IMG/VR virus record: IMGVR_UViG_3300042891_000711 | Span: 124,001-188,000 of that record | Direction: 5' to 3' (one strand) | Length of the DNA: 64,000 nucleotides | Part shown: positions 1 through 25,586 of the stretch, in pieces | Position numbering within the stretch: the first letter of the stretch is position 1 | Layout: the number at the start of each line of letters is the position of its first letter | Program-made: the position numbers and the translations under genes | Notes under the pieces: generated by a model | The model's input: the letters and a program-made list of their open reading frames with translations, nothing else | Database searches by the model: none | What the model was told of the DNA's origin: nothing

Positions 1-625
1 AGATATGTACAATGTTAGGGCACGAGAATATGTCAGTGTGCCCACAGCAGAACCTAAATACATATTAGAACCTGTTGCTTGTGGTATTAATGTAGTCTAT
101 CAAAACTTGCGCGAAGTTGCCGAACGTTCTGGTGAAGGTCGTCGCTTGTTAATATTGGGCAGTGGCTTCCTTGCATGGGTAGCGTATAACACCTTGTTAA
201 TTAATCATTTAGAGTTTGATATCACAGTAATTGGTCGCAGTAATCAAGACTTGTGGCAGGGTAAATTATCTCAAGAAATTACTGGTGTTTATGATGTTAT
301 TATTGATTTAACTGAACGCACTGATTATCTACAAGGCGACTGTGTTGCAAATAATGGTTTAATCATTATTGGTACTGACAAACATATTAATCAAACATTT
401 GGACAATTGATTTGGAAAGCCGTTACTATTAGTTTCCCAAGCCCACGAACACCACGCTTTTATGAAGCAATGGTGTTAGCACGTGATTGGGTTGCTTCTG
501 GTCAATTAACCGTTGACAAGTTCTGGACAAAGTCGTATAATAGAAAGATAGAGTGGCAATCTGCATTTGCAGATGGCGTTAATAGACCAGCAGGCTACAG
601 TAGAGGATACATTAAGTGGGATTAA
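1..625 (+). CDS. Medium-chain (Zn-type) dehydrogenase/reductase-like protein, 5'-truncated by window edge
   Basis: LEPVACG and Rossmann-like ILGSGFLA motifs; frame is open to the window start. Confidence 0.6.
   Translation, partial: DMYNVRAREYVSVPTAEPKYILEPVACGINVVYQNLREVAERSGEGRRLLILGSGFLAWVAYNTLLINHLEFDITVIGRSNQDLWQGKLSQEITGVYDVIIDLTERTDYLQGDCVANNGLIIIGTDKHINQTFGQLIWKAVTISFPSPRTPRFYEAMVLARDWVASGQLTVDKFWTKSYNRKIEWQSAFADGVNRPAGYSRGYIKWD
513..541 (+). promoter_or_regulatory. Consensus sigma70 promoter inside the dehydrogenase CDS
   Basis: TTGACA(513-518)-17 nt-TATAAT(536-541), 75 nt upstream of the next gene. Confidence 0.7.
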
Positions 626-1134
626 ACACAGAAGAACGTCAGGAAGTAGTATATTTTACAGGATATGAAGTAGAGCATACAATATGTTATGGTATGAAAA
701 CATTGTTTGTAGTGGGCACTCCACCTGTAGAAGAAATATTTGAAAAAGCTCGGGCAAATGAATGTAGTCACATTTACTTTGGTACTAGTCAAAGTTTTAA
801 TCCGCAAGCAATGACCTATGAAGAATACAAGCCCTGGGATGATGTTATTCTTGAATGTTTAAAGAATGACTACTGGGTCAGCTTAGACTTTGGTGTAGAA
901 CACATCGAAGGTGTTATTGAAAGCGGGTATTCTGAATACGCTAGATTTGTTCCTATGATCAGTGTTAAATTACCCTACATTAATCAACTTAACTACAATG
1001 CTACACTTAAACTTGATGACATTACGTGGGGTAAAACTAATCCTGGCGTGTGGACACATCATTTACAAACGCTAATGGGTAAAGATAAATTTACCTATTG
1101 GGATCAATATACTCAAGATACAGAGATCAAATAA
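616..1134 (+). CDS. Hypothetical phage protein in the DNA-modification locus
   Basis: 172-aa ORF, GTG start overlapping upstream stop, GAGG upstream. Confidence 0.7.
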   Translation: MGLNTEERQEVVYFTGYEVEHTICYGMKTLFVVGTPPVEEIFEKARANECSHIYFGTSQSFNPQAMTYEEYKPWDDVILECLKNDYWVSLDFGVEHIEGVIESGYSEYARFVPMISVKLPYINQLNYNATLKLDDITWGKTNPGVWTHHLQTLMGKDKFTYWDQYTQDTEIK

Positions 1135-1154
1135 TCAAATACAGAAAGGTTGAT

Positions 1155-1643
1155 ATGAACTTACAATTAGTTACAGAAATCTTAAAAAGCAAACATAATA
1201 ATTTAATGAAATTAGTACCAACATCTGCTAAACTTACTAGTCGAGATTATAATGAAGTTTTTGAAACTAACTATCCATGGTATCAAGTAGTCATCGGACT
1301 AAGCGGAAAATGCACTGACAGTAAAAAAAGAGCAGCCAAAATGGGATTTGACTATAATTTAGATTTAAGATATATGACAGATCTATGGATTAAACAAAAA
1401 GGACGATGTCAATTAACTGGTCAAATTATGAGTTTTCAACCAGGAAACCAATGGAATAAAAACCCGCTATCGTGTTCAATTGACCGAATTGATAACAGCC
1501 AAGGGTATATCAAAGGTAATGTTAGATTACTCACTCACTGGGCTAACAATGCTAAAAGCACATGGGATTTTAATGTCTTTGAGAGTATGATTAAAAGTTC
1601 TTCAATAAATTTGGGATTAATAAATGATACAAGCAGAACGTGA
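1155..1643 (+). CDS. HNH/His-Me finger homing endonuclease-like protein
   Basis: W..Q.GRC.LTG and SIDRIDNSQGY..GNV....ANNAK motifs; ATG 1155 follows AAGG. Confidence 0.7.
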   Translation: MNLQLVTEILKSKHNNLMKLVPTSAKLTSRDYNEVFETNYPWYQVVIGLSGKCTDSKKRAAKMGFDYNLDLRYMTDLWIKQKGRCQLTGQIMSFQPGNQWNKNPLSCSIDRIDNSQGYIKGNVRLLTHWANNAKSTWDFNVFESMIKSSSINLGLINDTSRT

Positions 1644-2028
1644 ACAACTAGAACGTATTAAGTCCAATGGAATACGTACAACTTATATTAAAGTTAGAAC
1701 TGAATTTGAAGGGTTTCATTACTACCCTAACGCAGGTACTATTGATTCGCGTATCAAATTTCTTGAGAATGAACATCGACATATATTCAAAGTTGAGGTG
1801 AAAATATCAGTTACGCACCTCGACCGTGAATTAGAATTTTTCTTAGTTAAATGGGCTTTACAAGAATTTATTAAAGCAGGTAATCAAAATCACAAATCGT
1901 GTGAAATGATTGCTGTTAACATTTTAGAAAATCATTTAATACCATTGTATGGTAATAGATCTTATACTGTAGTAGTATCCGAGGATGGGGAATCAGATGG
2001 TATTATTGAATTTGTTCCACAGCTTTAA
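1624..2028 (+). CDS. dpdL: QueD-paralogous T-fold protein, DpdL-like (putative CDG decarboxylase)
   Basis: FEGFH, LENEHRHIF (LxxxHRHxF), DRELEF, SCEMIA, VSEDGE motifs; separate canonical queD at 12247. Confidence 0.55.
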   Translation: MIQAEREQLERIKSNGIRTTYIKVRTEFEGFHYYPNAGTIDSRIKFLENEHRHIFKVEVKISVTHLDRELEFFLVKWALQEFIKAGNQNHKSCEMIAVNILENHLIPLYGNRSYTVVVSEDGESDGIIEFVPQL

Positions 2029-2740
2029 TTAGTTCTTCTAAAGTTATTGAACAACTTATACGTTTAGATCTATTATCAAACTTAGGTAGTAATTCTAAAT
2101 TAGCATAATGCCCTATAATTTCTGGAGAAATATTTTGTTTAAACCCTTCAGTAATGCTAAATTTATGATCTAATTCAAAGTTAGCACCTCGTTCTAAATT
2201 TTGAGGATTAATTTTATTTTGATAGTGTGTCCAACTCTTATAAGTATGATTAAGGACTTGTTCTCTATACAATTCCCACTCAGTTTTTAGTTCCTTGGAA
2301 ATAGCAATACCATTTTTAATTTTTGTATATGTTGCTTCGATGTAGCAAGAAGGATTTCGTTTAATGGCCTTAGCTGATTGTTTTTGTTTAGTCTCATTAC
2401 TATGAGTCTTATTATACATAGGATTATTTTCGCCGGAATGCCCGCCTCTAGTAGCAATTGCTTTCGAAATTTTATTACCCTTTGTAGCAAGCCAACTACG
2501 ATCGTTATGTCGTTCTTTAAGAACAGCATTTCCTCTCTCGCTCATCAGTTTCATATGAGCACGTCGTTGTTCTGGAGTAATTTTACTATCTCTAGATGCT
2601 TGTGCTTTTTTAATAAAACCAGGACATTGAGTAATTTTCTCAACACATCTCATTTTTTTGGAATTATAACTTATGTAAAAGGCTTGACATCCGCACAAAT
2701 AACACGTATTATTAACATTAACATTAGTAAGTTTAGGCAT
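2003..2740 (-). mobile_element. Free-standing HNH homing endonuclease with NUMOD3-type motif, inserted antisense
   Basis: N-terminal CxxC, GENNPMYNKTHSNETKQKQS (NUMOD3-like), C-terminal LDHKFS...NLELLPKFDNRSK HNH motif; opposite strand to flanking operon. Confidence 0.75.
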
Positions 2741-2800
2741 AGTTCTATCTCTCTATTGTTATTATTTATCTCAGCCGTCACTATTTAAGGAGAATTTTCC

Positions 2801-3031
2801 GTGGCAAATCCAGTTTGGCTTAAAAAGTATCTTACTATGAAGCCTGAAGTAAGACAAATCTACAACGACTTAGATGCATGGTGCAACTACTGTCGTTTCC
2901 ACATGATCAAGTATGACGAGGCTGATTTATATGTTAGCCCAGCTTACAAAGAATGGCAGGAAAAACGCAAACGTCGTGAACAATGGCGTCAACAGCAAGG
3001 ACAAACGCAGGGTTATCAAGGACGTAGATAG
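2801..3031 (+). CDS. Small hypothetical protein
   Basis: 76 aa, GTG start with AAGGAG RBS. Confidence 0.7.
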   Translation: MANPVWLKKYLTMKPEVRQIYNDLDAWCNYCRFHMIKYDEADLYVSPAYKEWQEKRKRREQWRQQQGQTQGYQGRR

Positions 3032-3032
3032 C

Positions 3033-4130
3033 ATGACTGTCTACATCGTTGATTTAGAAGCGGTGGATACAAGGTACACGGGTCAATGGAAGACTCATGT
3101 ACCTATGTTACTTGAAGATCATGGGCACGAAGTATTTGTAATTAGCGGCCCTCATGATATTCCTAGTGCTACTACCCCCGGCGCTTTCCTTAACTTTGGT
3201 GGTACTAACATTTACAAAGCCGCACAGGTTGAGCAAATGGCTAGACTATTCACTGAAGGTCAAATTCATAAAGGTGACCACTTCATCTTTACTGATGCTT
3301 GGCATCCTGGCATCATTAACTTAAAGTACATGAGCGAGCTGTTACAGATTCCTGTAACCATACACGCATTATGGCATGCTGGCAGTTATGATCCACAGGA
3401 CTTCTTAGGTCGTTTAATTGGTAATGCTCCGTGGGTACGTCACGCAGAAAAGAGTTTCTTTCATGCTATTGACTATAACTACTTTGCTACAGACTTTCAT
3501 ATCGAGATGTTCTTTACTAATCTATTAAATGATTACCCTAGCGAAAATCCTTGGTTTGACGAGGACTTGGCAGAACTACGTGCAGGTACCTTGACAGATA
3601 AGATTGTACGTACAGGTTGGCCTATGGAATATATGCCTACTACTATTAGTCCGTTCAAGACTGAGAAGCGTGACCTAATCTTATTCCCACATCGTATAGC
3701 ACCAGAAAAGCAAGTTGAAATCTTTAAAGAACTAGCGACTGCATTACCACAATACGAGTGGATTGTTTGCCAAGAACAGAATCTAACTAAAGAAGCATAT
3801 CATACCTTACTGGGCGAAGCTAAGTTGGTGTTTAGTGCCAACCTACAAGAAACTCTAGGCATTAGTATGTATGAAGGTGCCCTAGTAGATGCTATACCTA
3901 TGGTACCAGATAGACTAAGTTATACAGAGATGTATGCTGAGATATGGAAGTATCCTAGTGAGTGGACTGAATCCTATAGTAGTTTCTTACATAATAAGCA
4001 AGCACTATGCGATAAGATTGTAGAGTTCATGACTGACTATGATGAATATGCTAAGTTAGTACCGCAACAGGCACGTAGTCTACATCACGATTTCTTTTCG
4101 GCAACTGGACTATTAAAGAATATTAAGTAA
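3033..4130 (+). CDS. GT-B fold glycosyltransferase (family 1/4-like)
   Basis: FPHRIAPEKQ and ANLQETLGISMYEG (Ex7E) motifs; likely start ATG 3033. Confidence 0.75.
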   Translation: MTVYIVDLEAVDTRYTGQWKTHVPMLLEDHGHEVFVISGPHDIPSATTPGAFLNFGGTNIYKAAQVEQMARLFTEGQIHKGDHFIFTDAWHPGIINLKYMSELLQIPVTIHALWHAGSYDPQDFLGRLIGNAPWVRHAEKSFFHAIDYNYFATDFHIEMFFTNLLNDYPSENPWFDEDLAELRAGTLTDKIVRTGWPMEYMPTTISPFKTEKRDLILFPHRIAPEKQVEIFKELATALPQYEWIVCQEQNLTKEAYHTLLGEAKLVFSANLQETLGISMYEGALVDAIPMVPDRLSYTEMYAEIWKYPSEWTESYSSFLHNKQALCDKIVEFMTDYDEYAKLVPQQARSLHHDFFSATGLLKNIK

Positions 4131-4714
4131 TGTCAGCATTTGATCCAATATACCAGTTTGAACGAGCATTAGGTGAGCTTACAGGCGCACCTTTTGTTGT
4201 TATGACAGATTCATGTACACATGCACTAGAACTGTGTCTACGTTACGACAAGGTAAAACGATGTCTTTTTACAGCATTTACCTACCTTAGTGTGCCAATG
4301 ACCATGCATAAATTAGACATTTCTTATGGTTTATTGGGCGATAATGAATGGGTCGGAGAATATCCTATACTTGGTACACGGATATGGGATAGTGCAAGAT
4401 TACTACGTACGGGCATGTATCGTGCGGGGCAGATGCAGTGTTTGAGTTTTGGCCACAGCAAACCATTAGACATCGGTCGTGGTGGTGCAATACTACTAGA
4501 CGATGAAGTTGCCTACAATAAACTTATACAGCAACGTAGCGACGGTAGAGACCTAAAGATAACACCTTGGCAAAGTCAAAAGGTATTTGAAGTTGGCTAT
4601 CACTACCGCCCTACAATAGAAGAAGCACAACAAGCATTAGAAAAATTACCCTCAGTAGATCAATCACCTAAATACTATGAATATCCGGACCTACGTGAAA
4701 TTATTATCAAATAA
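4130..4714 (+). CDS. Short DegT/DnrJ-family PLP aminotransferase-like protein
   Basis: SCTHALEL, WDSA, SFGHSKPL..GRGGAIL motifs; only 194 aa. Confidence 0.7.
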   Translation: MSAFDPIYQFERALGELTGAPFVVMTDSCTHALELCLRYDKVKRCLFTAFTYLSVPMTMHKLDISYGLLGDNEWVGEYPILGTRIWDSARLLRTGMYRAGQMQCLSFGHSKPLDIGRGGAILLDDEVAYNKLIQQRSDGRDLKITPWQSQKVFEVGYHYRPTIEEAQQALEKLPSVDQSPKYYEYPDLREIIIK

Positions 4715-4715
4715 T

Positions 4716-4745
4716 TTGACACCGCCTAAATAATAGTGTTACACT
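4716..4745 (+). promoter_or_regulatory. sigma70-type promoter with nested TAAATA upstream of folE
   Basis: TTGACA-18 nt-(TGt)TACACT; CCTAAATA within spacer. Confidence 0.55.
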
Positions 4746-4791
4746 AATATATCAGTCGCCAATATCCACTGGCTTAACATAGGAGCAATAA

Positions 4792-5493
4792 ATGTCAGAA
4801 ATTAAATATGCAGTAAGCGAACGAATTCGCAGTAACTTAAAAGCGAAGAACAAACGCTTCTGGGCAGGTGACAATGTATCAGAATACATCACCGAAGAAG
4901 ATAAACAACTATTAATCGATGAAGCAACAGAAGCTTTTGAAACTGTATTAGACACATTGCTTATTGATCGTGAGAATGATCCTAACAGTAAAGGTACAGC
5001 ACGTAGACTTGCTAAGATGTACTATCATGAAATTATGGCAGGTAGATATGATCCAGCACCAGATGCAACTGCATTTCCAAATGACAGCACGGATCGCTAT
5101 GAAGGTATGCTAGTGGTACGTAGTGAACTACGTAGTATGTGCAGTCATCACCATCAGCCAGTTAAAGGTGTAGCCTATATTGGTATTATTGCTGCACAAA
5201 AACTAATTGGTCTAAGTAAGTATACACGTATCGCGCAATGGTGTGCTACACGTGGCACATTACAAGAAGAATTGTGTAATGATATTTCAAGAGAGATTAT
5301 GAAGGCAACTGGTAGTAACGATGTTGCTGTATATATTCAAGCAACACATGGTTGCTGTGAGAATCGTGGTATTCTAGCACATAGCTCGCTTACACAAACT
5401 ACAGTACTCAAAGGTGCATTTAATAATGACCCAGGTACTAAACAAGAATTCTTTGATAATGTAAAACTTCAACAGCAGTTTGCACCACGATGA
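4792..5493 (+). CDS. folE: GTP cyclohydrolase I
   Basis: SMCSHHHQP, IGLSKYTRIA, LQEEL, HGCCENRG motifs; AGGAG RBS. Confidence 0.95.
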   Translation: MSEIKYAVSERIRSNLKAKNKRFWAGDNVSEYITEEDKQLLIDEATEAFETVLDTLLIDRENDPNSKGTARRLAKMYYHEIMAGRYDPAPDATAFPNDSTDRYEGMLVVRSELRSMCSHHHQPVKGVAYIGIIAAQKLIGLSKYTRIAQWCATRGTLQEELCNDISREIMKATGSNDVAVYIQATHGCCENRGILAHSSLTQTTVLKGAFNNDPGTKQEFFDNVKLQQQFAPR

Positions 5494-5834
5494 ACAATAT
5501 CAAACGCACAGTAAAAGAATATTGTTGGGCACTCTGCGACAAGAAGTTAGATAAAGTTGCAGAGTTCTTACACGATGATGTAGTTAGTTACGGTAGATGG
5601 ATCCCTGGACTAATGAAGGCTAATGTATTATCTGCACACGAAAAACTATTTGCACAGTTTGACAAACTACAGGTGTTGCCATTGTACACATACTTTGACG
5701 AAGATACTGTGGCCTGTAGATTTAATGTTCATGAGAATGGTGCGGCCGCATACGAAATGGCAGTGTTCATTACTGTTGACGAGCAAGGGCTGTTCAAAGA
5801 AATTAGAACGTTTAAGAATAGTAATAAGGAATAG
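5490..5834 (+). CDS. NTF2/SnoaL-like protein
   Basis: 114 aa; helix-then-beta pattern with FLHDDVV motif. Confidence 0.5.
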   Translation: MNNIKRTVKEYCWALCDKKLDKVAEFLHDDVVSYGRWIPGLMKANVLSAHEKLFAQFDKLQVLPLYTYFDEDTVACRFNVHENGAAAYEMAVFITVDEQGLFKEIRTFKNSNKE

Positions 5835-5836
5835 TT

Positions 5837-6178
5837 ATGAAATGGTTTGATAATTGGATTCAACGTTGCTACAATCGTGCTCGTGAACGTGATGAACTTA
5901 TTGATGTCGACGGCTGGGATGAACCAAAACGTAGTCGTCGTGGGCGTCTTGGTAAAGGAGGGCCTATAAGTAATGGCACACGTAGAGTAGAGCATAACTA
6001 TGATGATGACAGTGTTATTACATTTAAAATCTATGGTGCCAATGGTGGTAAGATTGTAGAAACATCACGCTACGATGAAAAGAAAGATAACGAAAGTATC
6101 AGACGTTATGTCATTGACGAAAACGCAGATATGGCAGAAAGTTTAAGTAAAATTGTTACTATGGAGTATATGCGATGA
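5837..6178 (+). CDS. Hypothetical protein
   Basis: 113-aa ORF with AAGGA RBS. Confidence 0.7.
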   Translation: MKWFDNWIQRCYNRARERDELIDVDGWDEPKRSRRGRLGKGGPISNGTRRVEHNYDDDSVITFKIYGANGGKIVETSRYDEKKDNESIRRYVIDENADMAESLSKIVTMEYMR

Positions 6179-6723
6179 ATAATGTTGAAAAAGTGTACTA
6201 CGAATATCTACATATACACGATATGGTTGCTAATATTGTATCTCAAATGTACAAGGACAACTGGCGTCCAGACTACATTGTTGGACTTACCCGCGGTGGA
6301 TTGATTCCGGCTGTGGTTATGAGCAATGTTTATCATATTCCAATGGAGACTTTAAAGGTTAGTCTACGTGATAGCGACACCGGTCCGGAAAGTAACTTAT
6401 GGATGGCGGAAGATGCGTTTGGTCAAGTAGTTGATCATGCTGTGGAAGATAGAAAAGTTATGGTACACGGTACACGCAAGAAAATTCTTATCTTAGATGA
6501 CATCAACGATACAGGCGCTACACTAGATTGGATTATCCAAGATTGGCAATCAAGCTGCTTACCCGATGATCCGCTTTGGGAAAGCGTTTGGGGCAACAAC
6601 GTGCGCTTTGCTGTGCTAATTGATAATTTAAGTAGTAACTTTAGTCGTAAAGTTGATTATTCCGCTAAAGAGATTAATAAAGCAGAAAAAGATGTATGGA
6701 TCGTTTATCCATGGGAGAGATAG
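6175..6723 (+). CDS. Type I phosphoribosyltransferase (xanthine/guanine PRT-like)
   Basis: IVGLTRGG, PRPP-binding ILILDDINDTGAT, C-terminal WIVYPWE. Confidence 0.88.
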   Translation: MNNVEKVYYEYLHIHDMVANIVSQMYKDNWRPDYIVGLTRGGLIPAVVMSNVYHIPMETLKVSLRDSDTGPESNLWMAEDAFGQVVDHAVEDRKVMVHGTRKKILILDDINDTGATLDWIIQDWQSSCLPDDPLWESVWGNNVRFAVLIDNLSSNFSRKVDYSAKEINKAEKDVWIVYPWER

Positions 6724-8738
6724 CTGTTAATAAAAATAAAATCTTTATTGTTAACAGACCCGGTACTACAACTTTTCCTATTCCGTTACTGTGGGCAAGT
6801 GCAAAAACATACTACGAAGAAAATAGTAAGCACTCTGCACAATGGGAGTGGGGCACTCCAGATTTAAATTACAACGACTTTGATCAACTATTGGCATTCT
6901 TGATAGATGAAAGACCTACTGTGGTGGGTTTTAGTCTATATGTATGGAATGAAACATTCTCTCTCAAACTAGCCAAAGAATTAAAACATCATCTTAAAGA
7001 TACTATCATAGTTGTTGGTGGGCCACAAGCTGATATACAATACAACACTGATTATTTTAAACTTCACCCGTATGTTGACTTGGTAATCCCAAGTGATGCT
7101 TATGGAGAAAGATCTATATTAGATATTTTGGATACTATTACAGAATCTACCTCAACTCCAAAGTGGGATAACCTACAATATAGTTATTATCCTGATAGTC
7201 AAGGCAATATAAAATTCAACAGTTTAGCACCAAAGAAAAGAGAATTTAAATGGCCGTCTAATCCATTTAGAGCACAGGAATCATATATAAAATCATTGAT
7301 TGATAATCGTGATTATTTCATTATGATCTTAATTGAGACTTCGAGAGGCTGTCCATATAAATGTAGTTTTTGTGATTGGGGAGGCGGAGTATTTACTAAA
7401 GTAGTTAAAAAAGAATTTGCCACGGTACTTGATGAGATTACATGGGCTGGTGAGAATGCAATCGATATGTTATCTTTTACTGATGCCAATTTTGGTGCAT
7501 TTGATATTGATATAGAATATATAAAACATCTGATTGATGTTAATAAAAAATATGGATTCCCATCAGGCGTTAAAATACAACCCACCAAGTCAAAAATACA
7601 CAATCTATTTAAAATATATTCAATGTTAGCTGATGCTAACTTATTATCACATTATCAAATTTCTATTCAGGACCTAGACGATAATGTAAAGAAGAATGTT
7701 GATCGCATTGATTTTTCTTTCGAAGAGCAAATATCAATGTTCCACCAACTACAACAGCACAAATATCTACCAGTGTATATCGAAATGATTCTTGGATTAC
7801 CAGGTAGTTCGTTGGCCACAGTTAAAGATAGTATACACAAAATCAGCTTAGAAAAATTAGCATCACCAGTAGGGCATTTTTGGGCATTGCTGCCAACAAC
7901 TCCTGCATATAATCCCGTCTATCGAGAAAAATATAAATTAGTCACAGTTAACGGTAAAACATCCTACGGAGCCGATGCCGGTAGCAGCGCACTTAGGGAA
8001 AAATCAATCTGTATTACAGATGATATAACCACTGAATTTGTTGTAGGATCATTTTCTTATACAACAGACGAGTGGATTAATATGCATCTATTACAGCTTT
8101 TTACTGCATCAGTTCAAGGCTCGGAAATCTTAAATTTAATAGCTGATTATTTGTGGCAAACTTATAATATTAAATATGGCGAGTTTTTTGATACATGTAT
8201 GCAGACCTTGTTAACTGACCAACACGTTGATCAAAAATTACAACACGATGTATTGTTATATCGTAATAAACTATTAAATTGGTTAGATGGGGCGACTGGA
8301 GATTTGTATATTGATTATTGCAAGGAATTTTCGTTTTTACTGTCTCCATCGATATACTACATATTTTTAGCGTTAACGCAGACGGACGAGTTTTTTAAAG
8401 GTGTATTACTATCTATATCAAAATTAACACCAGTAACTGATGAAATTATTGATTTATGCGAGTTTTCTAAAAATAGACTTAAAGATATCACGTATCGCCC
8501 AGGAAAAATATTTACCACACAATACAACTGGCCTAAATACATCGAAACTGCTGTATTAGAAAAATCAGCCAAAACCTATCAATTATTAGATACCTCAATT
8601 GATAGATACGGTTACAGTATGCCACTTGATCATATTCAATATTCGAAGAATTCTGTTGAATACATAGTTAAGTATATAGAATTAATAGCCGATGTACACA
8701 AAGGTAAAAAAACGGTTGATCGAATGATAGAAGTATAG
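6711..8738 (+). CDS. B12-binding domain radical SAM protein
   Basis: VGFSLYVWN...VGGPQ cobalamin-binding domain; ETSRGCPYKCSFCDWG CxxxCxxC; TDANFG. Confidence 0.88.
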   Translation: MGEIAVNKNKIFIVNRPGTTTFPIPLLWASAKTYYEENSKHSAQWEWGTPDLNYNDFDQLLAFLIDERPTVVGFSLYVWNETFSLKLAKELKHHLKDTIIVVGGPQADIQYNTDYFKLHPYVDLVIPSDAYGERSILDILDTITESTSTPKWDNLQYSYYPDSQGNIKFNSLAPKKREFKWPSNPFRAQESYIKSLIDNRDYFIMILIETSRGCPYKCSFCDWGGGVFTKVVKKEFATVLDEITWAGENAIDMLSFTDANFGAFDIDIEYIKHLIDVNKKYGFPSGVKIQPTKSKIHNLFKIYSMLADANLLSHYQISIQDLDDNVKKNVDRIDFSFEEQISMFHQLQQHKYLPVYIEMILGLPGSSLATVKDSIHKISLEKLASPVGHFWALLPTTPAYNPVYREKYKLVTVNGKTSYGADAGSSALREKSICITDDITTEFVVGSFSYTTDEWINMHLLQLFTASVQGSEILNLIADYLWQTYNIKYGEFFDTCMQTLLTDQHVDQKLQHDVLLYRNKLLNWLDGATGDLYIDYCKEFSFLLSPSIYYIFLALTQTDEFFKGVLLSISKLTPVTDEIIDLCEFSKNRLKDITYRPGKIFTTQYNWPKYIETAVLEKSAKTYQLLDTSIDRYGYSMPLDHIQYSKNSVEYIVKYIELIADVHKGKKTVDRMIEV

Positions 8739-8744
8739 TATAAT
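8716..8744 (+). promoter_or_regulatory. sigma70-type promoter for queE
   Basis: TTGATC-17 nt-TATAAT. Confidence 0.55.
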
Positions 8745-8762
8745 TAAAATATTAATCGAAGA

Positions 8763-9623
8763 ATGGATAAACAAATGAAATTAAAAGTCAGTGAAATATT
8801 CTACAGTGCGCAAGGTGAAGGACGCTTTATTGGTGTCCCGTCGTTGTTTCTGCGTACATTTGGCTGTAACTTTACCTGCGGTGGATTTGGGATGCCTCGT
8901 GGCGAAGTTAGTACAGAGCGAAATGTAATCAAAGTAGAGCAGTACAAGACATACAATGACCTGCCTTTGGTTAATACAGGCTGTGATAGTTACGCAAGCT
9001 GGGATCCTCGCTTTAAAAGTTTAAGTCCATTGTTATCCGTAGACGAAACAGTTAAACAAATGCTAGATGTTGTTCCTAATAACAATTGGCATCAGGCAAA
9101 TGGTAATAATGTGCATTTGGTTATTACAGGCGGCGAGCCGTTATTAGGTTGGCAACGTGCGTTTCCTAAACTGTTAGCACATGATGATATGTTTAACCTG
9201 CTTAACTTAACATTTGAAACAAATGGTACTCAGGCATTACATGATGACTTTGCGGCCTATTTGAAACTGTGGAAAAGACAAGCACGTGAGATTACATTTA
9301 GTGTAAGTCCAAAGTTAAGTGCCAGTGGTGAAACTTGGGAAGATGCTATTAAGCCCGAAATTGTAGCAAGTTACGAAAAGGTTGGTACAACATATCTCAA
9401 GTTTGTTATCGAAACACCTAAAGACTTCGATGAAGTTGATTGTGCTGTCGTAGCATATAGAGCGGCAGGCTTTACAGGCGTAGTATATGTTATGCCCGTT
9501 GGTGGTGTTGTTAGCGTATATGATGGTAATAAGTTCCATATAGCAGATGAAGCAATGAAACGTGGTTATTATTACAGTCCTAGATTGCACGTTGATCTTT
9601 GGGGCAATTCTTGGGGGAAATAG
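8763..9623 (+). CDS. queE: 7-carboxy-7-deazaguanine synthase (radical SAM)
   Basis: EIFYSAQGEG, FLRTFGCNFTC...GCDS, ITGGEPLL, FETNGT, SVSPKL, SPRLHVDLWG. Confidence 0.93.
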   Translation: MDKQMKLKVSEIFYSAQGEGRFIGVPSLFLRTFGCNFTCGGFGMPRGEVSTERNVIKVEQYKTYNDLPLVNTGCDSYASWDPRFKSLSPLLSVDETVKQMLDVVPNNNWHQANGNNVHLVITGGEPLLGWQRAFPKLLAHDDMFNLLNLTFETNGTQALHDDFAAYLKLWKRQAREITFSVSPKLSASGETWEDAIKPEIVASYEKVGTTYLKFVIETPKDFDEVDCAVVAYRAAGFTGVVYVMPVGGVVSVYDGNKFHIADEAMKRGYYYSPRLHVDLWGNSWGK

Positions 9624-9624
9624 T

Positions 9625-10059
9625 ATGTGGAAGAAAATTAAAGCGTCACTAGGATTAAACAAAGCAGAACTTGCGGCAGAAGCTGAAGCCAAGGCATTAG
9701 CTGCACTTGAAGCAGCGGCTAAACGTGCAGAAGCCAAAGCCAAAGCCAAAGTTAAAGTAGTATCAGCTAAAGATGAAGCAACTGCAAAGGGTGAACCTTG
9801 GGTAAAAATATTAAGTATGGATTTAGATCCTAACGACCCAGGCAACGGAGCATTTGAATTAGATTGGAATGATAAATTCGTAGCTAACTTAATACGTGCA
9901 GGCTATCAAGGTCGAACAGATGCTGATATTGTAGACAACTGGTTCAAAGCAATATGCCGCAATGTAATCACTGAATCATACGAACAAGACCAAGCTGATC
10001 CAGCAAAACGCAATGAACGTAGACGTGATTTAGGTAATGGCCGTACAGAAGTCTCTTGA
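9625..10059 (+). CDS. Hypothetical phage protein
   Basis: ATG 9625; Ala/Lys-rich N-terminus then ATAKGEPWV...FELDWN domain. Confidence 0.7.
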   Translation: MWKKIKASLGLNKAELAAEAEAKALAALEAAAKRAEAKAKAKVKVVSAKDEATAKGEPWVKILSMDLDPNDPGNGAFELDWNDKFVANLIRAGYQGRTDADIVDNWFKAICRNVITESYEQDQADPAKRNERRRDLGNGRTEVS

Positions 10060-10084
10060 CATTTAACCAAATTGAAAGTATAAT
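10056..10084 (+). promoter_or_regulatory. Consensus sigma70 promoter, probably giving a leaderless mRNA
   Basis: TTGACA-17 nt-TATAAT, ATG 6 nt after the -10 box, no RBS. Confidence 0.75.
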
Positions 10085-10090
10085 AGCTAC

Positions 10091-11113
10091 ATGAGATACT
10101 TAATCGTAGATGCAGCAAACACATTTTTCCGTGCTAGACACAGCGCACATAGACAAAGCGATACTTGGGATAAGTTAGGCTTTGCTATACACGTTACCTT
10201 AGCATCAATTAACAAAGCATGGCGCGATCAACGTGCAGATCACGTTATCGTGTGTCTAGAGGGTCGTAGCTGGCGCAAGGACTTTTATACTCCGTATAAA
10301 GCCAATCGCGCTGTGGCACGTGCTGCCAAGACTGAAGCAGAGCAAGAAGAAGAACAAATGTTCTGGGACGCCTTTGATGCTATGAAAACATTCCTAGCTG
10401 AAAAGACTAACTGTACTGTATTGCAACACAGTGAGCTCGAAGCAGATGATTTGATTGCTGGCTGGATTCAAACACACCCAACTGACCACCATACTATTGT
10501 TAGTAGCGACACAGACTTTTATCAACTGTTAAGTGATAACGTTAATCAGTATAATGGTATTGCAGACGAATTACACACGCTTACTGGTATATATGATAAG
10601 AAAGGTAAACTAGTTATCGATAAGAAAACTAAAGAGCCTAAGAAGATTCCGGACCCTAAGTTTATTCTATTTGAAAAATGTATGCGTGGTGATCCTACTG
10701 ATAATATCTTTAGTGCTTATCCTGGTGTGCGCACTAAAGGCACTAAGAACAAAGTTGGTTTAGAAGAAGCGTTCGGTGATAAGGATCGACAAGGTTATGC
10801 TTGGAATAATCTAATGTTACAACGTTGGACTGATCATAACGGTGATGAACATCGTGTGTTGGATGACTACAATCGTAATGTTACTTTAGTAGACTTGGCG
10901 GCACAGCCTGAAGAATATAAACTTATGATAGAAGAAACTATCAAAGCTAATGCAACTGCACTTAATCGTCCTATGGTAGGTGCACAGTTCTTAAAGTTCT
11001 GCGGCAGATATGACCTAGTTAAACTAAGCGACAATGCCAGCAATATGGCAGAATGGATGTGTGCTAGTTATCCATCGTCAGCAGTAACATTATATCATTT
11101 AATTAATAGTTAG
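10091..11113 (+). CDS. T4 RNase H-like 5'-3' exonuclease / flap endonuclease
   Basis: LIVDAAN, SWRK..Y..YKANR, LEADDLIA, IVSSDTDF.QL, GDPTDNI motifs. Confidence 0.9.
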   Translation: MRYLIVDAANTFFRARHSAHRQSDTWDKLGFAIHVTLASINKAWRDQRADHVIVCLEGRSWRKDFYTPYKANRAVARAAKTEAEQEEEQMFWDAFDAMKTFLAEKTNCTVLQHSELEADDLIAGWIQTHPTDHHTIVSSDTDFYQLLSDNVNQYNGIADELHTLTGIYDKKGKLVIDKKTKEPKKIPDPKFILFEKCMRGDPTDNIFSAYPGVRTKGTKNKVGLEEAFGDKDRQGYAWNNLMLQRWTDHNGDEHRVLDDYNRNVTLVDLAAQPEEYKLMIEETIKANATALNRPMVGAQFLKFCGRYDLVKLSDNASNMAEWMCASYPSSAVTLYHLINS

Positions 11114-11123
11114 AAAGTAAATT

Positions 11124-11708
11124 TTGATAGACAAATCACAGAAGTTTTTAGCGTTAGACTTAGAATTAAACCAACCCAGTGGCAAGATCATTCAGGTTGG
11201 CATTGCCATTGGCAGTGCAAATGATAAGTTTGAAAATTACATAACTAAAAAATGGTATATTGATCCAAACGAACCAATTGACCAATTTATTATTGACTTG
11301 ACTGGTATCACTGATCACGACATTAGATTAAACTGCGTAAGTCATGTTACAGTTGCACGTGAGCTCAGTGACTTAATCAAACAGCACAACACATGGATCA
11401 ATCCTATTACATGGGGTGGTGGCGATAGTAGAGAACTATTAGATGAGTTCTGCAAAAACTATGCCGACTTTCCACACTTTGGTAGACGTTGGATTGATTG
11501 TAAAACATTCTATACGTTTATGATGTTTGCACGTGGTAAGAATCCAAGTGGTGGACTTGCTAGTGCCATGGGCACATTCAAACTGCATTTTAAAGGTACT
11601 GCACACAGAGCAGACGTTGATGCAGTTAATACTCTTGCACTATTCTTTAAGTTCCTCGAACGACAACGTGGTCTTGAAAACTTATTACATGATGCTAAAG
11701 TTATATAG
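11124..11708 (+). CDS. DEDDh 3'-5' exonuclease
   Basis: LALDLE, LTGIT, WGGGD, HRADVDA motifs. Confidence 0.88.
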   Translation: MIDKSQKFLALDLELNQPSGKIIQVGIAIGSANDKFENYITKKWYIDPNEPIDQFIIDLTGITDHDIRLNCVSHVTVARELSDLIKQHNTWINPITWGGGDSRELLDEFCKNYADFPHFGRRWIDCKTFYTFMMFARGKNPSGGLASAMGTFKLHFKGTAHRADVDAVNTLALFFKFLERQRGLENLLHDAKVI

Positions 11709-12198
11709 TTCGCTAATACTGGCCGTTATGTTAGTTGGCTGTGCTACTCCAGAAATAACCAAACTCGGTGAGCAGGACTATAAAGTTGTAGGTAAACTTC
11801 ATAAAGAAGAATACGATGAAATAATCACTATAGTTCGACAACACCCCAACCAACCTTTGAATTTTTATGTTACATCAATTGGTGGTACCAGTGAAGATTT
11901 GTTAGATGCTATGGACACTGTACATCAACACGGACAAGTAAATTGGTATGCTGTAGAATACTGCGATAGTGCTTGTGCTATTATGGCATTGGCCACACAT
12001 CATGCCTACGGTGAGTTTAAACTACATTCATTCTATTCTCGAGGTCATCATCAAGTACTGGCGGCACCAGAGTATAACGAACGTATACTAAAAAAGTTAA
12101 ACTCATATGGATATGATACAGATCGTATACATCATATGTTTGATAGTGTAGAACAGTTATGGCCGGTAATTATCGAAGATGGCAAAATAATCAATTGA
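11689..12198 (+). CDS. Lipoprotein with ClpP/crotonase-like fold
   Basis: Signal peptide with LVGC lipobox; TSIGG, CDSACA, LH motifs. Confidence 0.55.
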   Translation: MMLKLYSSLILAVMLVGCATPEITKLGEQDYKVVGKLHKEEYDEIITIVRQHPNQPLNFYVTSIGGTSEDLLDAMDTVHQHGQVNWYAVEYCDSACAIMALATHHAYGEFKLHSFYSRGHHQVLAAPEYNERILKKLNSYGYDTDRIHHMFDSVEQLWPVIIEDGKIIN

Positions 12199-12223
12199 CT
12201 TTATGCAAAAACCTAAATACAAT
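12195..12223 (+). promoter_or_regulatory. sigma70-type promoter with nested TAAATA upstream of queD
   Basis: TTGACT-17 nt-TACAAT; CCTAAATA overlapping the -10 box. Confidence 0.6.
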
Positions 12224-12246
12224 AGTAATATAGACAAGGAAAACTT

Positions 12247-12798
12247 ATGACACACGTAATTGATAAAACATTTGAATTCTGTTATGGACACAGAGTACAC
12301 ACACAACGACTAAATGGTGAATATGCGGCAGACTTAAAGTGTGCTTGCCGGCACTTACATGGACATGAAGGTAAGATGCAGGTGTTCTTGAAGAGCCCAA
12401 CTGGCGTTTTAGATTCAACAGGTATGGTAACTGACTTTAGACACCTAGAGTGGTTAAAGAAGTGGATCAATGAATACATTGACCATCAATTTATGCTGGA
12501 TGTTAATGATCCATTGTTTAGTCAACTGATTGGCACACGCACAATGATTCCTGTGTACATTCCAGAAACAGATCAATACGCAGGTAGTACGCTTGATTTG
12601 AGTGATTTAGAACCTAATACGCCAGAGTATGAATACTTTGAAGGTTTCTTTATTGTAGACTTTGTTCCTACTAGCGAAAACTTATCAAGTTGGATGGCAG
12701 AGTTAGTGGATGCTAAAATGAAGAAACTAAATGTAACAGTAGATCGCATTGACTGGTGGGAAACTCCCAAGTCGCGTAGTACTTTTATTAGAGGCTAG
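12247..12798 (+). CDS. queD: 6-carboxytetrahydropterin synthase
   Basis: FCYGHR, CRHLHGH, GMVTDF, DHQF, PTSENL, WETP motifs. Confidence 0.93.
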   Translation: MTHVIDKTFEFCYGHRVHTQRLNGEYAADLKCACRHLHGHEGKMQVFLKSPTGVLDSTGMVTDFRHLEWLKKWINEYIDHQFMLDVNDPLFSQLIGTRTMIPVYIPETDQYAGSTLDLSDLEPNTPEYEYFEGFFIVDFVPTSENLSSWMAELVDAKMKKLNVTVDRIDWWETPKSRSTFIRG

Positions 12799-12799
12799 T

Positions 12800-13441
12800 G
12801 TGAAGATTTATTCAATGTTAATTCATCCCTCAGAACACAGTTTCAATAAGGAAATGTTTTCTGCGGCAAATACAGTATTTGCTGATAACGGGCATACTGT
12901 AAAAACTATTGACTTGTATCATAGTCAATTTGACCCACGTGAATTAACCAACAATATAGTAAATTTATCTAATTCATCGTATGATCAAAAATGGACCAGA
13001 GCCGAAAAGTTAGATCTATTGCCAGAATTTACTATAGGAGAATTAGAAAAATTAAAAGAATGTGATATATTGTATATTCAGTCTCCCATATGGTTGTGGA
13101 GCCCACCTGCAATATTAAAATCATATATGGAAAGTGTTTTTATATTTAATACAGTATTTACAACACCACACCATGCATTTGATACTACATTGCCATTTCG
13201 ACTATTTAAAGGCAAACGAGTAATTTTGTCTCTGACTGCGTCGGCTTCTGAAGAAATGATGTTGCAGAACTTTAGAGATAAACACGAATTATTAGTTCAT
13301 TTAAAAAATGTGTTTGAACTTGTTGGGTTTGAATTTATTGATCCTTTTATTGCCTGGGAACAAAATGGTGAAAGTGATCATAGAGAAACTGATATTAATA
13401 ATTTATGTAACTATATACAATCAACTGTACTAAAGGACTAA
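12800..13441 (+). CDS. Flavodoxin-like NAD(P)H:quinone oxidoreductase (MdaB/KefF-like)
   Basis: HP...SFN, DLY...FDP, PIWLWSPPAILKSYME motifs; GTG start. Confidence 0.8.
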   Translation: MKIYSMLIHPSEHSFNKEMFSAANTVFADNGHTVKTIDLYHSQFDPRELTNNIVNLSNSSYDQKWTRAEKLDLLPEFTIGELEKLKECDILYIQSPIWLWSPPAILKSYMESVFIFNTVFTTPHHAFDTTLPFRLFKGKRVILSLTASASEEMMLQNFRDKHELLVHLKNVFELVGFEFIDPFIAWEQNGESDHRETDINNLCNYIQSTVLKD

Positions 13442-13442
13442 C

Positions 13443-13808
13443 ATGACTATAACTGTTTTCATTCTACTGGTGTTATTTGGTATTAAGCATTTTATTGCTG
13501 ACTTTTTAATGCAGTATGAGTATATGCTACGTGAAAAAGGTATATATGGTGCGGAAGGTGGATTGCATCACGCGGCTGTACATGCGGCACTCACTCTCTT
13601 TATTCTTGTATTCTTTGCGCATAGTGCCAATGCTATTATTCTTCTTGCCCTGGCAGATGGAGTTATTCATTACCATATCGATTGGGTTAAACAACAACTA
13701 AATCGAGGGCTAACCTCAGCTGATCGCATGTTTTGGGTCTGGATGGGTGCCGATCAAGGCCTGCATTACTTAACATATATAGGAATTATCTATGTCGGAA
13801 CAATATAA
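13443..13808 (+). CDS. DUF3307-like membrane protein
   Basis: KHFIADF.MQ, HAAVH, HYHIDW.K, DQGLH motifs; hydrophobic helices. Confidence 0.75.
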   Translation: MTITVFILLVLFGIKHFIADFLMQYEYMLREKGIYGAEGGLHHAAVHAALTLFILVFFAHSANAIILLALADGVIHYHIDWVKQQLNRGLTSADRMFWVWMGADQGLHYLTYIGIIYVGTI

Positions 13809-20026: not shown

Positions 20027-20031
20027 TAAGG

Positions 20032-20054
20032 AAAAGCCCCGCAAGGGGCTTTTT
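20032..20054 (+). terminator. Rho-independent terminator (bidirectional geometry)
   Basis: AAAAGCCCC-GCAA-GGGGCTTTTT immediately after ATPase stop. Confidence 0.85.
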
Positions 20055-20060
20055 ACATGT

Positions 20061-20397: not shown

Positions 20398-20428
20398 AGC
20401 TGTTATAGTAAACAATTAGGAGTAACAT

Positions 20429-25580: not shown

Positions 25581-25586
25581 AATAAT

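Follow-up and report, generated by a model that had tools for sequence, protein, structure and literature searches.

The region analyzed here, a 64,000-nt window spanning positions 124,001-188,000 of the 218.9-kb uncultured jumbo phage contig IMGVR_UViG_3300042891_000711, carries a guanine-modification island in which FolE, QueD and QueE are encoded together with a DpdL-type QueD paralogue and without an identifiable QueC, matching the pathway type described for the 2'-deoxy-7-deazaguanosine (dDG) of Cellulophaga phage phiST (PMC10516641). A putative insertion enzyme is encoded just upstream of the window, and a glycosyltransferase that is a conserved member of the module in the environmental relatives examined hints at a still undescribed sugar-decorated form of the base. 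Such a glycosylated deazaguanine is plausible but unproven, as plain 7-deazaguanine offers no obvious acceptor atom. The module has three further conserved members, namely the glycosyltransferase, a purine phosphoribosyltransferase (PRTase) and a 172-aa protein. The observation made in an earlier note, that 7-deazaguanine genes are interleaved with a dehydrogenase, glycosyltransferase, short aminotransferase, SnoaL-like protein, PRTase and B12 radical SAM gene, was confirmed in full, with every one of these genes present on the positive strand. Its interpretation, that the glycosyltransferase, dehydrogenase and aminotransferase add a sugar or amino-sugar to give a new base, is only partly supported.

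Four genes of the module encode proteins assigned to 7-deazaguanine synthesis. FolE, a GTP cyclohydrolase I (4792-5493), was identified by PF01227 (9.3e-38) and phrog_2197 (2.1e-43). QueE, the 7-carboxy-7-deazaguanine (CDG) synthase (8763-9623), reaches 8.5e-13 to 4.9e-8 with NCBIfam QueE models, and alignment with phage QueE proteins shows a conserved Cys triad and GGEP motif, with an insert of about 35 residues between the second and third cluster cysteines. QueD, the 6-carboxytetrahydropterin synthase (12247-12798), was identified by PF01242 (6.5e-26), TIGR03367 (1.5e-14) and its CRHLHGH signature, which fits CxxxHGH. The DpdL-type protein (1624-2028), the proposed CDG decarboxylase, reads FLENEHRHIF, in agreement with the LxxxHRHxF motif that defines the family (PMC10516641), and has BLASTP matches to phiST CGPG_00067 (2.6e-13) and to Synechococcus phage BUCT-ZZ01 (7.6e-50). 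No QueC, QueF or TGT Pfam hit was found among the 50 window ORFs and six ORFs scanned from L001, a locus that includes sequence upstream of the window, and none is listed in the precomputed Pfam tables for the called genes of L001 and of L098, a 22.7-kb locus reaching 19 kb upstream of the window. In addition, no SGGxDS PP-loop motif occurs in any ORF of 80 aa or more in the window or in L098.

The earlier note had named the lack of any DpdA or other incorporation route in the genome as grounds for rejecting its reading, however a DpdA-like gene with a predicted TGT fold was found 2.5-4.2 kb upstream of window base 1 (L001:5171-6859). The AlphaFold2 model of this 562-aa protein (pLDDT 86.8) has as its 34 best PDB matches only bacterial or archaeosine tRNA-guanine transglycosylases (TGT), at probability 1.0, and its viral matches include phage proteins named TGT or queuine tRNA-ribosyltransferase. 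The DSGGFQ motif and residues D114, D159 and D307 are invariant in 61 relatives. A profile of the protein hits the Acidovorax phage ACP17 protein next to DpdL (1e-8) and phiST DpdA3 (3e-4; hhalign 89%).

The arrangement is not due to chance, as the same gene order recurs in 38 related environmental loci that span the whole cluster. The DpdA-like gene, the 172-aa protein, DpdL, the glycosyltransferase and QueE are present in 38/38 of these complete loci, FolE in 37/38 and the PRTase in 35/38. The glycosyltransferase (3033-4130) is a GT-B, GT4-like enzyme of unknown donor and acceptor; the window protein itself misses Pfam thresholds, however 7 of 12 family members hit Glycos_transf_1 (best 8e-12), the EX7E motif (E273/E281) and residues K212, R221 and K226 are invariant in the family alignment, and the Atlas structural neighbours of the family are GT4 proteins. 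Co-occurrence of this gene with deazaguanine genes, proposed beforehand as a test of the association, was borne out: among loci seeded with the glycosyltransferase, all 69 with enough flanking sequence carry DpdL and all 60 with more flank carry the DpdA-like gene, while among loci seeded with DpdL, 33/35 carry the glycosyltransferase at 4-4122 bp from DpdL. The gene also lies next to DpdL or DpdA, embedded in the deazaguanine cluster, in six isolate lineages (PA5oct, ACP17, X1, BCSR5, Phosso and BUCT-ZZ01), despite only 20-47% identity among the glycosyltransferases.

The core status of two further genes was missed by the earlier note. The product of the first (616-1134) is a conserved 172-aa acidic alpha/beta protein of unknown function with no Pfam or NCBIfam hit, whose AlphaFold2 model (pLDDT 81) gave no significant PDB fold match and only weak TIM-barrel-like segments; a homologue lies directly upstream of DpdA in ACP17. 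The second (6175-6723) encodes a type I purine (6-oxopurine-like) PRTase (PF00156, 2.9e-12), near-core in its distribution, whose best PDB relatives are archaeal purine PRTases and HGPRTs. Among 50,697 phage records, homologues of this PRTase occur only in DpdL phages, namely the phiST group, BUCT-ZZ01 and, by profile, PA5oct. A 113-aa protein of unknown function without a family hit (5837-6178) is semi-conserved, being present in 23/38 loci.

In contrast, the remaining enzymes highlighted in the earlier note are not fixed partners of the pathway and at most vary a decoration. The dehydrogenase, of which the 3' two-thirds occupy positions 1-625, is a 298-aa Zn-type (MDR) alcohol/sugar dehydrogenase that starts 272 nt upstream of the window (full gene L001:9114-10010; ADH_N 1.1e-10 and NCBIfam MDR hits) and is always paired with a GFO/IDH/MocA oxidoreductase encoded upstream of the window, the two occurring together in 14/38 complete loci. 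The short aminotransferase-like gene (4130-4714), whose start overlaps the stop of the glycosyltransferase gene, encodes a 194-aa miniature DegT/DnrJ-like PLP protein (PF01041, 4.3e-13) in which the SFGHSK lysine aligns with the PLP lysine of the full-length DegT at 28696-29829. It is present in 14/38 loci, and its homologues lie directly after glycosyltransferases in glycan cassettes of two other phages. The SnoaL-like (NTF2-fold) protein (5490-5834; PF12680, 3.8e-6, just above the Pfam cutoff) is found in 6/38 loci. The cobalamin-binding radical SAM enzyme (6696-8738), of the class B methyltransferase type, contains PF02310 and PF04055 domains and a CPYKCSFC cluster motif and matches a KedN5-family C-methyltransferase model (1.1e-48, below its cutoff); it occurs in 6/38 loci, all of them mini-DegT loci, at different positions inside the cluster, and has no homologue in the 50,697 phage records. 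As a group, these variable genes resemble sugar-tailoring enzymes. Also interleaved are two selfish inserts, an HNH homing endonuclease (1098-1643, positive strand; phrog_3322, 1.2e-21) present only in the closest relatives and a NUMOD3-type homing endonuclease (2003-2740, negative strand; PF07460, 3.3e-8), as well as two replication nucleases, a FEN (10091-11113) and an RNase T-like protein (11124-11708).

These results are best explained by a QueC-less DpdA/DpdL-type pathway, in which FolE, QueD and QueE would convert GTP to CDG, DpdL would remove the carboxyl group to give 7-deazaguanine, and the DpdA-like enzyme would exchange guanine in phage DNA for that base. These steps are inferred from family membership, and the DpdL reaction has been proposed in the literature but never shown biochemically, whereas the conserved membership of the glycosyltransferase, PRTase and 172-aa protein is demonstrated here by comparative genomics; what these additional proteins do is again inference. 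In this view, the glycosyltransferase works in the same pathway and most likely adds a sugar to the deazaguanine-derived base, either on DNA or on a precursor, while the GFO-type and MDR-type dehydrogenases, mini DegT-like protein, B12 radical SAM methylase, SnoaL-like protein and an upstream methyltransferase remodel that sugar, by analogy with glycan diversification on T-even phage hydroxymethylcytosine. The PRTase may either recycle the displaced guanine into GTP or activate CDG or 7-deazaguanine with PRPP. We consider a DpdA/DpdL-type 7-deazaguanine DNA modification highly likely, and involvement of the glycosyltransferase in that pathway somewhat more likely than not, as is this explanation as a whole, however it is doubtful, though possible, that the final base in DNA carries a sugar. 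Consistent with a need for additional enzymes, dpdA and dpdL of phiST and ACP17 did not yield dDG in E. coli, and the authors suggested that further enzymes may be needed.

Several points weigh against this explanation, in which DpdL activity is itself unproven. No chemistry is available for this phage, nothing shows that the sugar goes onto the deazaguanine, and about 136 kb of the contig was not examined. 7-Deazaguanine has no hydroxyl group for an O-glycoside, and no hydroxylase or hydroxymethylase is recognizable in the core; GT4 enzymes are retaining O-glycosyltransferases, and we are aware of no C- or N-glycosylation of a purine analogue by this family. The glycosyltransferase is strongly acidic (pI 5.15, net charge about -21), unlike a typical DNA-binding enzyme, although the polymerase and the DpdA-like protein are acidic too. 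DpdL phages without the glycosyltransferase exist (the phiST group, Bakedbeans and RHph_I1_18), with phiST DNA carrying plain dDG, and a distant branch of the glycosyltransferase family (25% identity) lies in a GlmS/LmbE-deacetylase context with no deazaguanine genes within 8 kb.

Of the alternatives, the best surviving, though unlikely, is that the phage makes unglycosylated dDG exactly as phiST does, and that the glycosyltransferase and sugar-type accessory enzymes serve another target, such as virion or host-envelope glycans or a modified pyrimidine made elsewhere in the genome, being located here only because this is an early-gene island near the polymerase. In addition to the points above, this is favoured by a separate nucleotide-sugar cassette in the window (an SDR epimerase/dehydratase and the full-length DegT, 27755-29829), by many other glycan- or radical-SAM-type genes in the window, and by the occurrence of mini-DegT homologues in generic glycan cassettes. 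Against it, the glycosyltransferase lies inside the deazaguanine cluster, between or next to DpdA, DpdL, FolE or QueE, in seven lineages whose glycosyltransferases share only 20-47% identity and whose gene orders otherwise differ, and the co-occurrence described above is 69/69 and 33/35. The thymidylate synthase in the window is a classical dUMP enzyme (PFNIAS) next to DHFR, so no hydroxylated pyrimidine source is seen here.

A less likely possibility is a pre-replicative, nucleotide-level route analogous to tubercidin biosynthesis, in which the PRTase condenses CDG or 7-deazaguanine with PRPP, DpdL decarboxylates the nucleotide, and host kinases and ribonucleotide reductase yield the deoxynucleoside triphosphate for incorporation by the phage family-B polymerase, leaving the TGT-fold protein an auxiliary or different role. 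The near-core distribution of the PRTase, its resemblance to 6-oxopurine PRTases and its restriction to DpdL phages in the records searched support this route, and FolE, QueD and QueE with a PRTase and no QueC follow the logic of the tubercidin pathway, where TubE uses CDG and PRPP. phiST also carries a MazG-like pyrophosphatase and a P-loop kinase-like gene beside DpdL, guanine replacement is complete in phiST, the ADG nucleoside is reported from the cytoplasm of CP220-infected cells, and dpdA and dpdL alone failed in E. coli. However, no UbiD-type decarboxylase, GMP-reductase-like enzyme or evident dGTP-excluding enzyme was identified, although an HD-domain hydrolase at 17717-18244 was not tested further, and the PRTase is equally well explained as salvage of the guanine released by base exchange. 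The published view is that all known phage 7-deazaguanines are post-replicative, and a TGT-fold enzyme with an intact catalytic Asp set is universally present and adjacent, TGT enzymes using free bases. Lastly, a pterin glycoside pathway akin to cyanobacterial biopterin glucoside is superficially matched by FolE, a T-fold protein, oxidoreductases and a GT-B enzyme, and the nearest DpdL homologue is in a cyanophage, but this is very unlikely given that QueE, which commits to 7-deazapurines, and a TGT-fold enzyme are core, DpdL lacks the catalytic Cys of PTPS/QueD, the dehydrogenases are absent from most relatives, and phiST, which has DpdL, has dDG in its DNA.

Among known systems, the phiST pathway (FolE, QueD, QueE, DpdL and DpdA3; Cui/Hutinet et al., NAR 2023, PMC10516641) shares the QueC-less gene set, a DpdL with LxxxHRHxF, a distant TGT-fold transglycosylase encoded nearby, and a homologous purine PRTase elsewhere in its genome. 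However, phiST has no homologue of the glycosyltransferase or the 172-aa protein, its DpdA3 is 259 aa and related only at profile level, and its MazG-like and kinase-like genes were not found here. The locus EST35_0316 to EST35_0322 of Pseudomonas jumbo phage PA5oct (Wroclawvirus) has the same order of DpdA-like protein (34% identity over the full length), glycosyltransferase (41%), DpdL, PRTase and QueE, and shares the clamp-like protein and family-B polymerase upstream. PA5oct lacks the dehydrogenases, mini-DegT, SnoaL-like protein, B12 radical SAM enzyme and 172-aa protein, and its DpdL reads HFH instead of HRH; its DNA resists G-containing restriction sites and carries a modified G of undetermined structure (PMC12191111). 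In Acidovorax phage ACP17, Xanthomonas phage X1 and Synechococcus phage BUCT-ZZ01, the glycosyltransferase is next to DpdL and a TGT-like protein of roughly 420 aa, with FolE, QueD and QueE, and ACP17 additionally has the 172-aa protein and BUCT-ZZ01 the PRTase. Their transglycosylase belongs to a different subfamily, hit by the profile of the present protein only at 1e-8 in ACP17, their hosts and gene orders differ, and they have no sugar-tailoring accessory genes.

The T-even DNA glucosyltransferases acting on 5-hydroxymethylcytosine and the arabinosyl-5-hydroxycytosine systems (PMC13326640) share the concept of a phage GT-B enzyme decorating a non-canonical base with a sugar that varies between strains. 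Those systems need a hydroxyl on a pyrimidine made by a thymidylate-synthase homologue, whereas here the only such homologue in the window is a classical ThyA, the partner genes are purine-modification genes, and there is no detectable sequence relation. The eukaryotic/bacterial QTMAN (GTDC1-like) tRNA-queuosine mannosyltransferase is a GT4-type enzyme that glycosylates a 7-deazaguanine derivative in a nucleic acid, using the cyclopentenediol hydroxyl of queuosine, which has no counterpart here. No QTMAN_N Pfam hit was obtained in any of the 12 family members, however a QTMAN-like cluster is among the structural neighbours of the model for this glycosyltransferase family (TM 0.74), with generic GT4 proteins as close or closer (TM 0.80).

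The 64-kb window lies on a 218,902-bp metagenomic contig (JBFDNT010002873.1, also IMG/VR UViG_3300042891_000711), with window base 1 corresponding to record position 124,001 and a GC content of about 38%. Megablast of window positions 1-13000 against 50,697 phage records found no match, although protein-level relatives are very abundant in metagenomes on contigs of up to about 375 kb. Pfam, PHROGs and NCBIfam scans, together with direct reading of the translations, confirm every gene that the earlier note had named from the sequence alone, and its observation therefore holds. The enzymes that make CDG from GTP are FolE (PF01227, 9.3e-38), QueD at 12247-12798 (PF01242, 6.5e-26), which has the canonical CxxxHGH motif as CRHLHGH, and QueE at 8763-9623, which is divergent but matches NCBIfam QueE models (8.5e-13) and keeps the cysteine triad and GGEP when aligned with phage QueEs. 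A Flavodoxin_2 (NAD(P)H quinone-reductase-like) gene and a gene for a DUF3307 membrane protein (12812-13808) follow QueD, and DUF3307 travels with QueD in the relatives where both are in range.

The 134-aa protein at 1624-2028 reads FLENEHRHIF, the LxxxHRHxF signature that takes the place of the QueD CxxxHGH and defines DpdL, the QueD paralogue proposed to decarboxylate CDG to 7-deazaguanine in Cellulophaga phage phiST (PMC10516641). The signature is conserved in 7 of 8 aligned phage DpdLs, the PA5oct protein (EST35_0318, at 12013-12390 of the PA5oct locus) reading H-F-H-Y-F where all other aligned DpdLs have H-R-H-x-F. The window protein is homologous to phiST DpdL (CGPG_00067; BLASTP 2.6e-13) and to seven other phage DpdLs, whereas its link to the QueD-like T-fold was only partial here (hhalign 75%, 46 columns), the published HHpred link being 99.9%. 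Decarboxylation by DpdL was not assayed here and has never been shown experimentally; the 2023 study reported that dpdA and dpdL from phiST or ACP17 gave no dDG in E. coli, and suggested that other enzymes may be required. No QueC, QueF or TGT family hit occurs among the 56 ORFs scanned or in the precomputed Pfam tables for the called genes upstream, and no SGGxDS PP-loop motif occurs in ORFs of the window or of a 22.7-kb upstream locus (L098). These searches reached 19 kb upstream of the window and left about 136 kb of the contig unexamined. The absence of the QueC, Gat-QueC or QueF enzymes of the preQ0, G+ and preQ1 branches fits the DpdL branch.

The earlier note found no dpdA in the window and named the lack of a DpdA/TGT or other incorporation route as a condition that would refute its reading; that condition is not fulfilled, as a DpdA-like gene exists 2.5-4.2 kb upstream of the window. 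In the upstream flanking locus (L001), the gene order is a family-B DNA polymerase, a methyltransferase-like gene, a clamp-like gene, a 562-aa protein with no family hit (u562, L001:5171-6859), a GFO/IDH/MocA oxidoreductase, a SulP permease and the dehydrogenase that runs into the window. The u562 protein is 34% identical over its full length to PA5oct EST35_0316, which lies directly upstream of the PA5oct glycosyltransferase (GT). A search of 1.84 billion representatives found 955 relatives, whose alignment has the invariant residues D114-S-G-G-F-Q, D159, H274/G277 and D307, recalling TDSGGFQ (Asp102), Asp156 and the nucleophile Asp280 of Zymomonas TGT. Single-sequence and profile searches against PDB sequences and Pfam found nothing, and the Xanthomonas phage X1 protein annotated as a TGT gave no PDB sequence hit either; u562 was identified only by the motif and by structure comparison. 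An AlphaFold2 model built on the alignment is confident (pLDDT 86.8, pTM 0.88), and its 34 best Foldseek matches in the PDB are all bacterial TGT or archaeosine TGT at probability 1.0. Activity on DNA was not assayed. Among viral models, u562 matches phage proteins named tRNA-guanine transglycosylase or queuine tRNA-ribosyltransferase, and the family profile also hits the ACP17 424-aa protein beside DpdL (1e-8) and phiST DpdA3 (3e-4; hhalign 89%). Long members of the family carry no fused GT, DpdL or PRTase domain.

To separate core from accessory genes, 80 IMG/VR loci seeded with the GT (69-100% identity) were fetched and all cluster proteins were mapped onto them. Of the 38 complete loci spanning u562 to QueE, all 38 carry u562, the 172-aa protein (u172), DpdL, the GT and QueE, while FolE is found in 37, the PRTase in 35, a 113-aa protein in 23, the GFO and MDR dehydrogenases (always together) in 14, the mini-DegT in 14, the B12 radical SAM enzyme in 6 (only within mini-DegT loci, at varying positions), the SnoaL-like protein in 6 and the SulP permease in 3. 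Co-occurrence of the GT with dpdA and dpdL, which the earlier note had proposed as a check on its reading, was observed throughout this sample: every GT-seeded locus with more than 2.5 kb upstream has DpdL (69/69), and every one with more than 6 kb upstream has the DpdA-like gene (60/60). A second sample, seeded with a DpdL alignment, gave 35 loci with at least 6 kb on both sides, but it overlaps the same broad clade, which dominates the environmental samples, and is not an independent estimate for all phages. Of these 35 loci, 33 have the GT (4-4122 bp from DpdL), 33 the DpdA-like gene, 30 the 172-aa protein and 24 the PRTase. Two homing endonucleases, an HNH type (1098-1643) and a NUMOD3 type on the minus strand (2003-2740), are inserted on either side of dpdL; they occur only in the nearest relatives and are absent from most, which shows recent selfish-element invasion of the modification cluster.

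Among cultured phages, the GT (20-47% identity) lies inside the deazaguanine cluster in PA5oct-like Pseudomonas jumbo phages, Acidovorax ACP17, Xanthomonas X1/BUDD, Burkholderia BCSR5, Sinorhizobium Phosso and Synechococcus BUCT-ZZ01, in each case next to DpdL and/or a TGT-like protein. PA5oct DNA resists several G-containing restriction sites, and its modified G has not been identified (PMC12191111). DpdL occurs without the GT in the phiST group, Vibrio Bakedbeans and Rhizobium RHph_I1_18. In Bakedbeans gp176 (positions 11221-12372 of its locus), DpdL forms the C-terminal 120 residues of an annotated 383-aa protein; this ORF was examined as a possible DpdA-DpdL fusion, however its N-terminal 255 residues match neither DpdA profile, and it is either a fusion or a mis-called start. 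A distant GT branch (25% identity) in Xanthomonas PhiXhv phages lies between GlmS and an LmbE-type deacetylase, with no deazaguanine genes within 8 kb. In the literature searched, no paper was found that links a glycosyltransferase or a PRTase to DpdL.

The GT is a GT-B, GT4-like enzyme whose family alignment shows an invariant EX7E motif (ETLGISMYE) and conserved Lys and Arg residues in the C-terminal, nucleotide-sugar-binding domain. Seven of 12 family members reach Pfam Glycos_transf_1 (PF00534, best 8e-12), although the window protein itself is below threshold, and a profile search of the PDB gives only weak GT4 hits. The Atlas model of its cluster has generic GT4 proteins as structural neighbours (TM 0.80) as well as a QTMAN-like cluster (TM 0.74); no QTMAN_N domain is detected by Pfam, so a QTMAN-like reading is not supported and that resemblance is a lead only. 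It was also considered whether the GT might itself be the missing DpdA3, but this was rejected as it shows no similarity to phiST DpdA3 and has clear GT4 features. The protein is acidic (pI 5.15) and no fused domains were found; donor and acceptor were not assayed. A separate nucleotide-sugar cassette at 27755-29829, in which an SDR epimerase/4,6-dehydratase-type gene (PF01370, 1.6e-40) overlaps a full-length DegT/DnrJ aminotransferase (1.3e-84), could supply an amino-deoxy-sugar donor for a phage glycosyltransferase.

The PRTase resembles archaeal purine PRTases and HGPRTs. tBLASTn over the phage collection finds homologues only in the phiST group and BUCT-ZZ01, and a profile adds PA5oct, all of which are DpdL phages; the association is specific but rests on few lineages. 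It fits two roles, either salvage of the guanine displaced by base exchange or activation of CDG/7-deazaguanine with PRPP as in the tubercidin pathway. The 172-aa protein models as an alpha/beta protein (pLDDT 81) with no PDB profile hit and no significant fold match, and it shows no similarity to phiST CGPG_00066 or to the Phosso "glycosylase". Atlas feature hits to glycoside-hydrolase fragments scored only 0.85 and are a lead at best.

The first ORF of the window (1-625) is the 3' part of a 298-aa MDR-type dehydrogenase that starts 272 nt before the window, and both it and the GFO-type dehydrogenase hit sugar and cyclitol dehydrogenase models weakly. Between the two dehydrogenase genes lies a phage-encoded SulP-family anion permease (L001:7930-9111; 393 aa, no STAS domain, PF00916 5e-49; BicA/sulfate permease-like), found in only 5 of the 80 GT-seeded relatives. 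The B12 radical SAM enzyme is of the class B (cobalamin) methyltransferase type, with an N-terminal B12-binding domain (PF02310, 1.7e-8) and a radical SAM core (PF04055, 2.1e-9) carrying a CxxxCxxC motif (CPYKCSFC). Its best hit is the KedN5 family of cobalamin-dependent C-methyltransferases (1.1e-48, far below that model's cutoff), and no homologue was found in the phage collection. The short DegT-like protein keeps the Schiff-base lysine but lacks about 50 residues of the large domain and most of the C-terminal domain. Homologues of the same short length lie directly downstream of glycosyltransferases in glycan cassettes in Flavobacterium phage immuto_2-6A and Synechococcus phage S-SCSM2R, where a radical SAM gene follows. 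A GFO-type dehydrogenase, a DegT-type aminotransferase, a methyltransferase and a cobalamin radical SAM C-methylase are the enzyme types that remodel an already attached sugar in gentamicin biosynthesis, although this is an analogy only. The patchy distribution of these genes suggests optional diversification rather than a fixed pathway.

Taken together, the well-supported part of this reading is a phiST/PA5oct-type, QueC-less DpdA/DpdL 7-deazaguanine DNA modification island, in which the DpdL and DpdA-like activities are inferred and not shown. The contig is uncultured and metagenomic, no chemistry was available, and whether the virion DNA contains a 7-deazaguanine nucleoside was not measured. 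What is new relative to the described pathway, and rests on the comparative genomics, is that the GT, the PRTase and the 172-aa protein are conserved members of this module. The location of the GT among the pathway genes, in lineages with otherwise different gene orders, argues for a functional link. The earlier note had proposed a hypermodified G bearing a sugar or amino-sugar group, an interpretation that is only partly supported. Which atom would accept a sugar is unresolved, since 7-deazaguanine has no hydroxyl and phiST makes plain dDG without a GT. Nor was a thymidylate-synthase homologue found that would make 5-hm or 5-ho pyrimidine nucleotides, the hydroxylated acceptors of T-even-type base glycosylation; the only thymidylate-synthase homologue in the window is a classical dUMP enzyme (LPPCH, PFNIAS) next to DHFR, the rest of the genome not having been examined on this point. 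A sugar-bearing deazaguanine in DNA is therefore only a tentative possibility. In its fullest form, guanine in this abundant environmental jumbo-phage lineage, and in PA5oct, ACP17, X1, BCSR5, Phosso and BUCT-ZZ01, would be replaced by a glycosylated 7-deazaguanine, the first sugar-bearing purine-derived base in DNA, installed by a GT4-type enzyme acting after DpdL and DpdA. In this particular phage the sugar would be remodelled further by oxidation, transamination and B12-radical-SAM C-methylation, and the PRTase and the 172-aa protein would be the components missing from earlier failed reconstitutions of the dDG pathway.

Of the alternatives, an unrelated role for the GT is somewhat less likely than a sugar-bearing base. 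A PRTase-driven pre-replicative route, similar to that of tubercidin or toyocamycin, is less likely still: a purine-type PRTase is present in a CDG pathway for which no QueC was found, is near-core and is restricted to DpdL phages, but its substrate was not identified and no UbiD-like or GMP-reductase-like partner was seen, which leaves this route neither favoured nor excluded by the test. An HD-domain phosphohydrolase (HD_4), a HIT-family protein, DHFR and the classical thymidylate synthase are encoded at 17717-18244, 22949-23422 and 25048-26420; the HD protein was not examined as a possible dGTP-excluding enzyme.

Eight 7-deazaguanine bases are known in phage DNA, none of which carries a sugar, and the DpdL step has never been reconstituted. 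The GT, the purine PRTase and the small protein of unknown function recur as partners of DpdL and DpdA across unrelated hosts and across a very abundant uncultured phage lineage; the GT search returned at least 8000 scored candidates, all significant, and the DpdA-like protein has 955 representative clusters. These proteins are concrete candidates for the "other unknown enzymes" invoked in the 2023 study, and offer a candidate explanation for the unidentified modified G of the therapeutic jumbo phage PA5oct. Several carriers are culturable, making the question accessible to direct testing. The result bears on phage evasion of restriction, of END nucleases and of anti-deazaguanine glycosylases, and on whether complete G replacement is post- or pre-replicative.

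Further genes of interest lie outside the modification cluster. A second B12-binding radical SAM protein (510 aa) is encoded at 15241-16773, about 2.4 kb downstream of QueD, and an AAA ATPase followed by a DUF2201 (VWA plus metallopeptidase-like) protein at 18929-21700. On the minus strand at 35420-45977, a carbamoyltransferase (NodU/CmcH type) is followed by a run of radical SAM genes at 39383-40672, 40659-43214 (851 aa with two radical SAM cores plus SPASM), 43211-44563 and 44550-45977, of unknown function; this density of radical SAM enzymes is unusual for a phage. Upstream of the polymerase, a 1075-aa protein with a weak Amidoligase_2 hit (L098:3561-6788, record about 108.4-111.6 kb) lies next to a Pol-beta-type nucleotidyltransferase, with a fatty-acid-desaturase-like gene on the opposite strand about 1.7 kb further downstream. 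A single giant ORF of 2891 aa occupies 55296-63971 on the minus strand.
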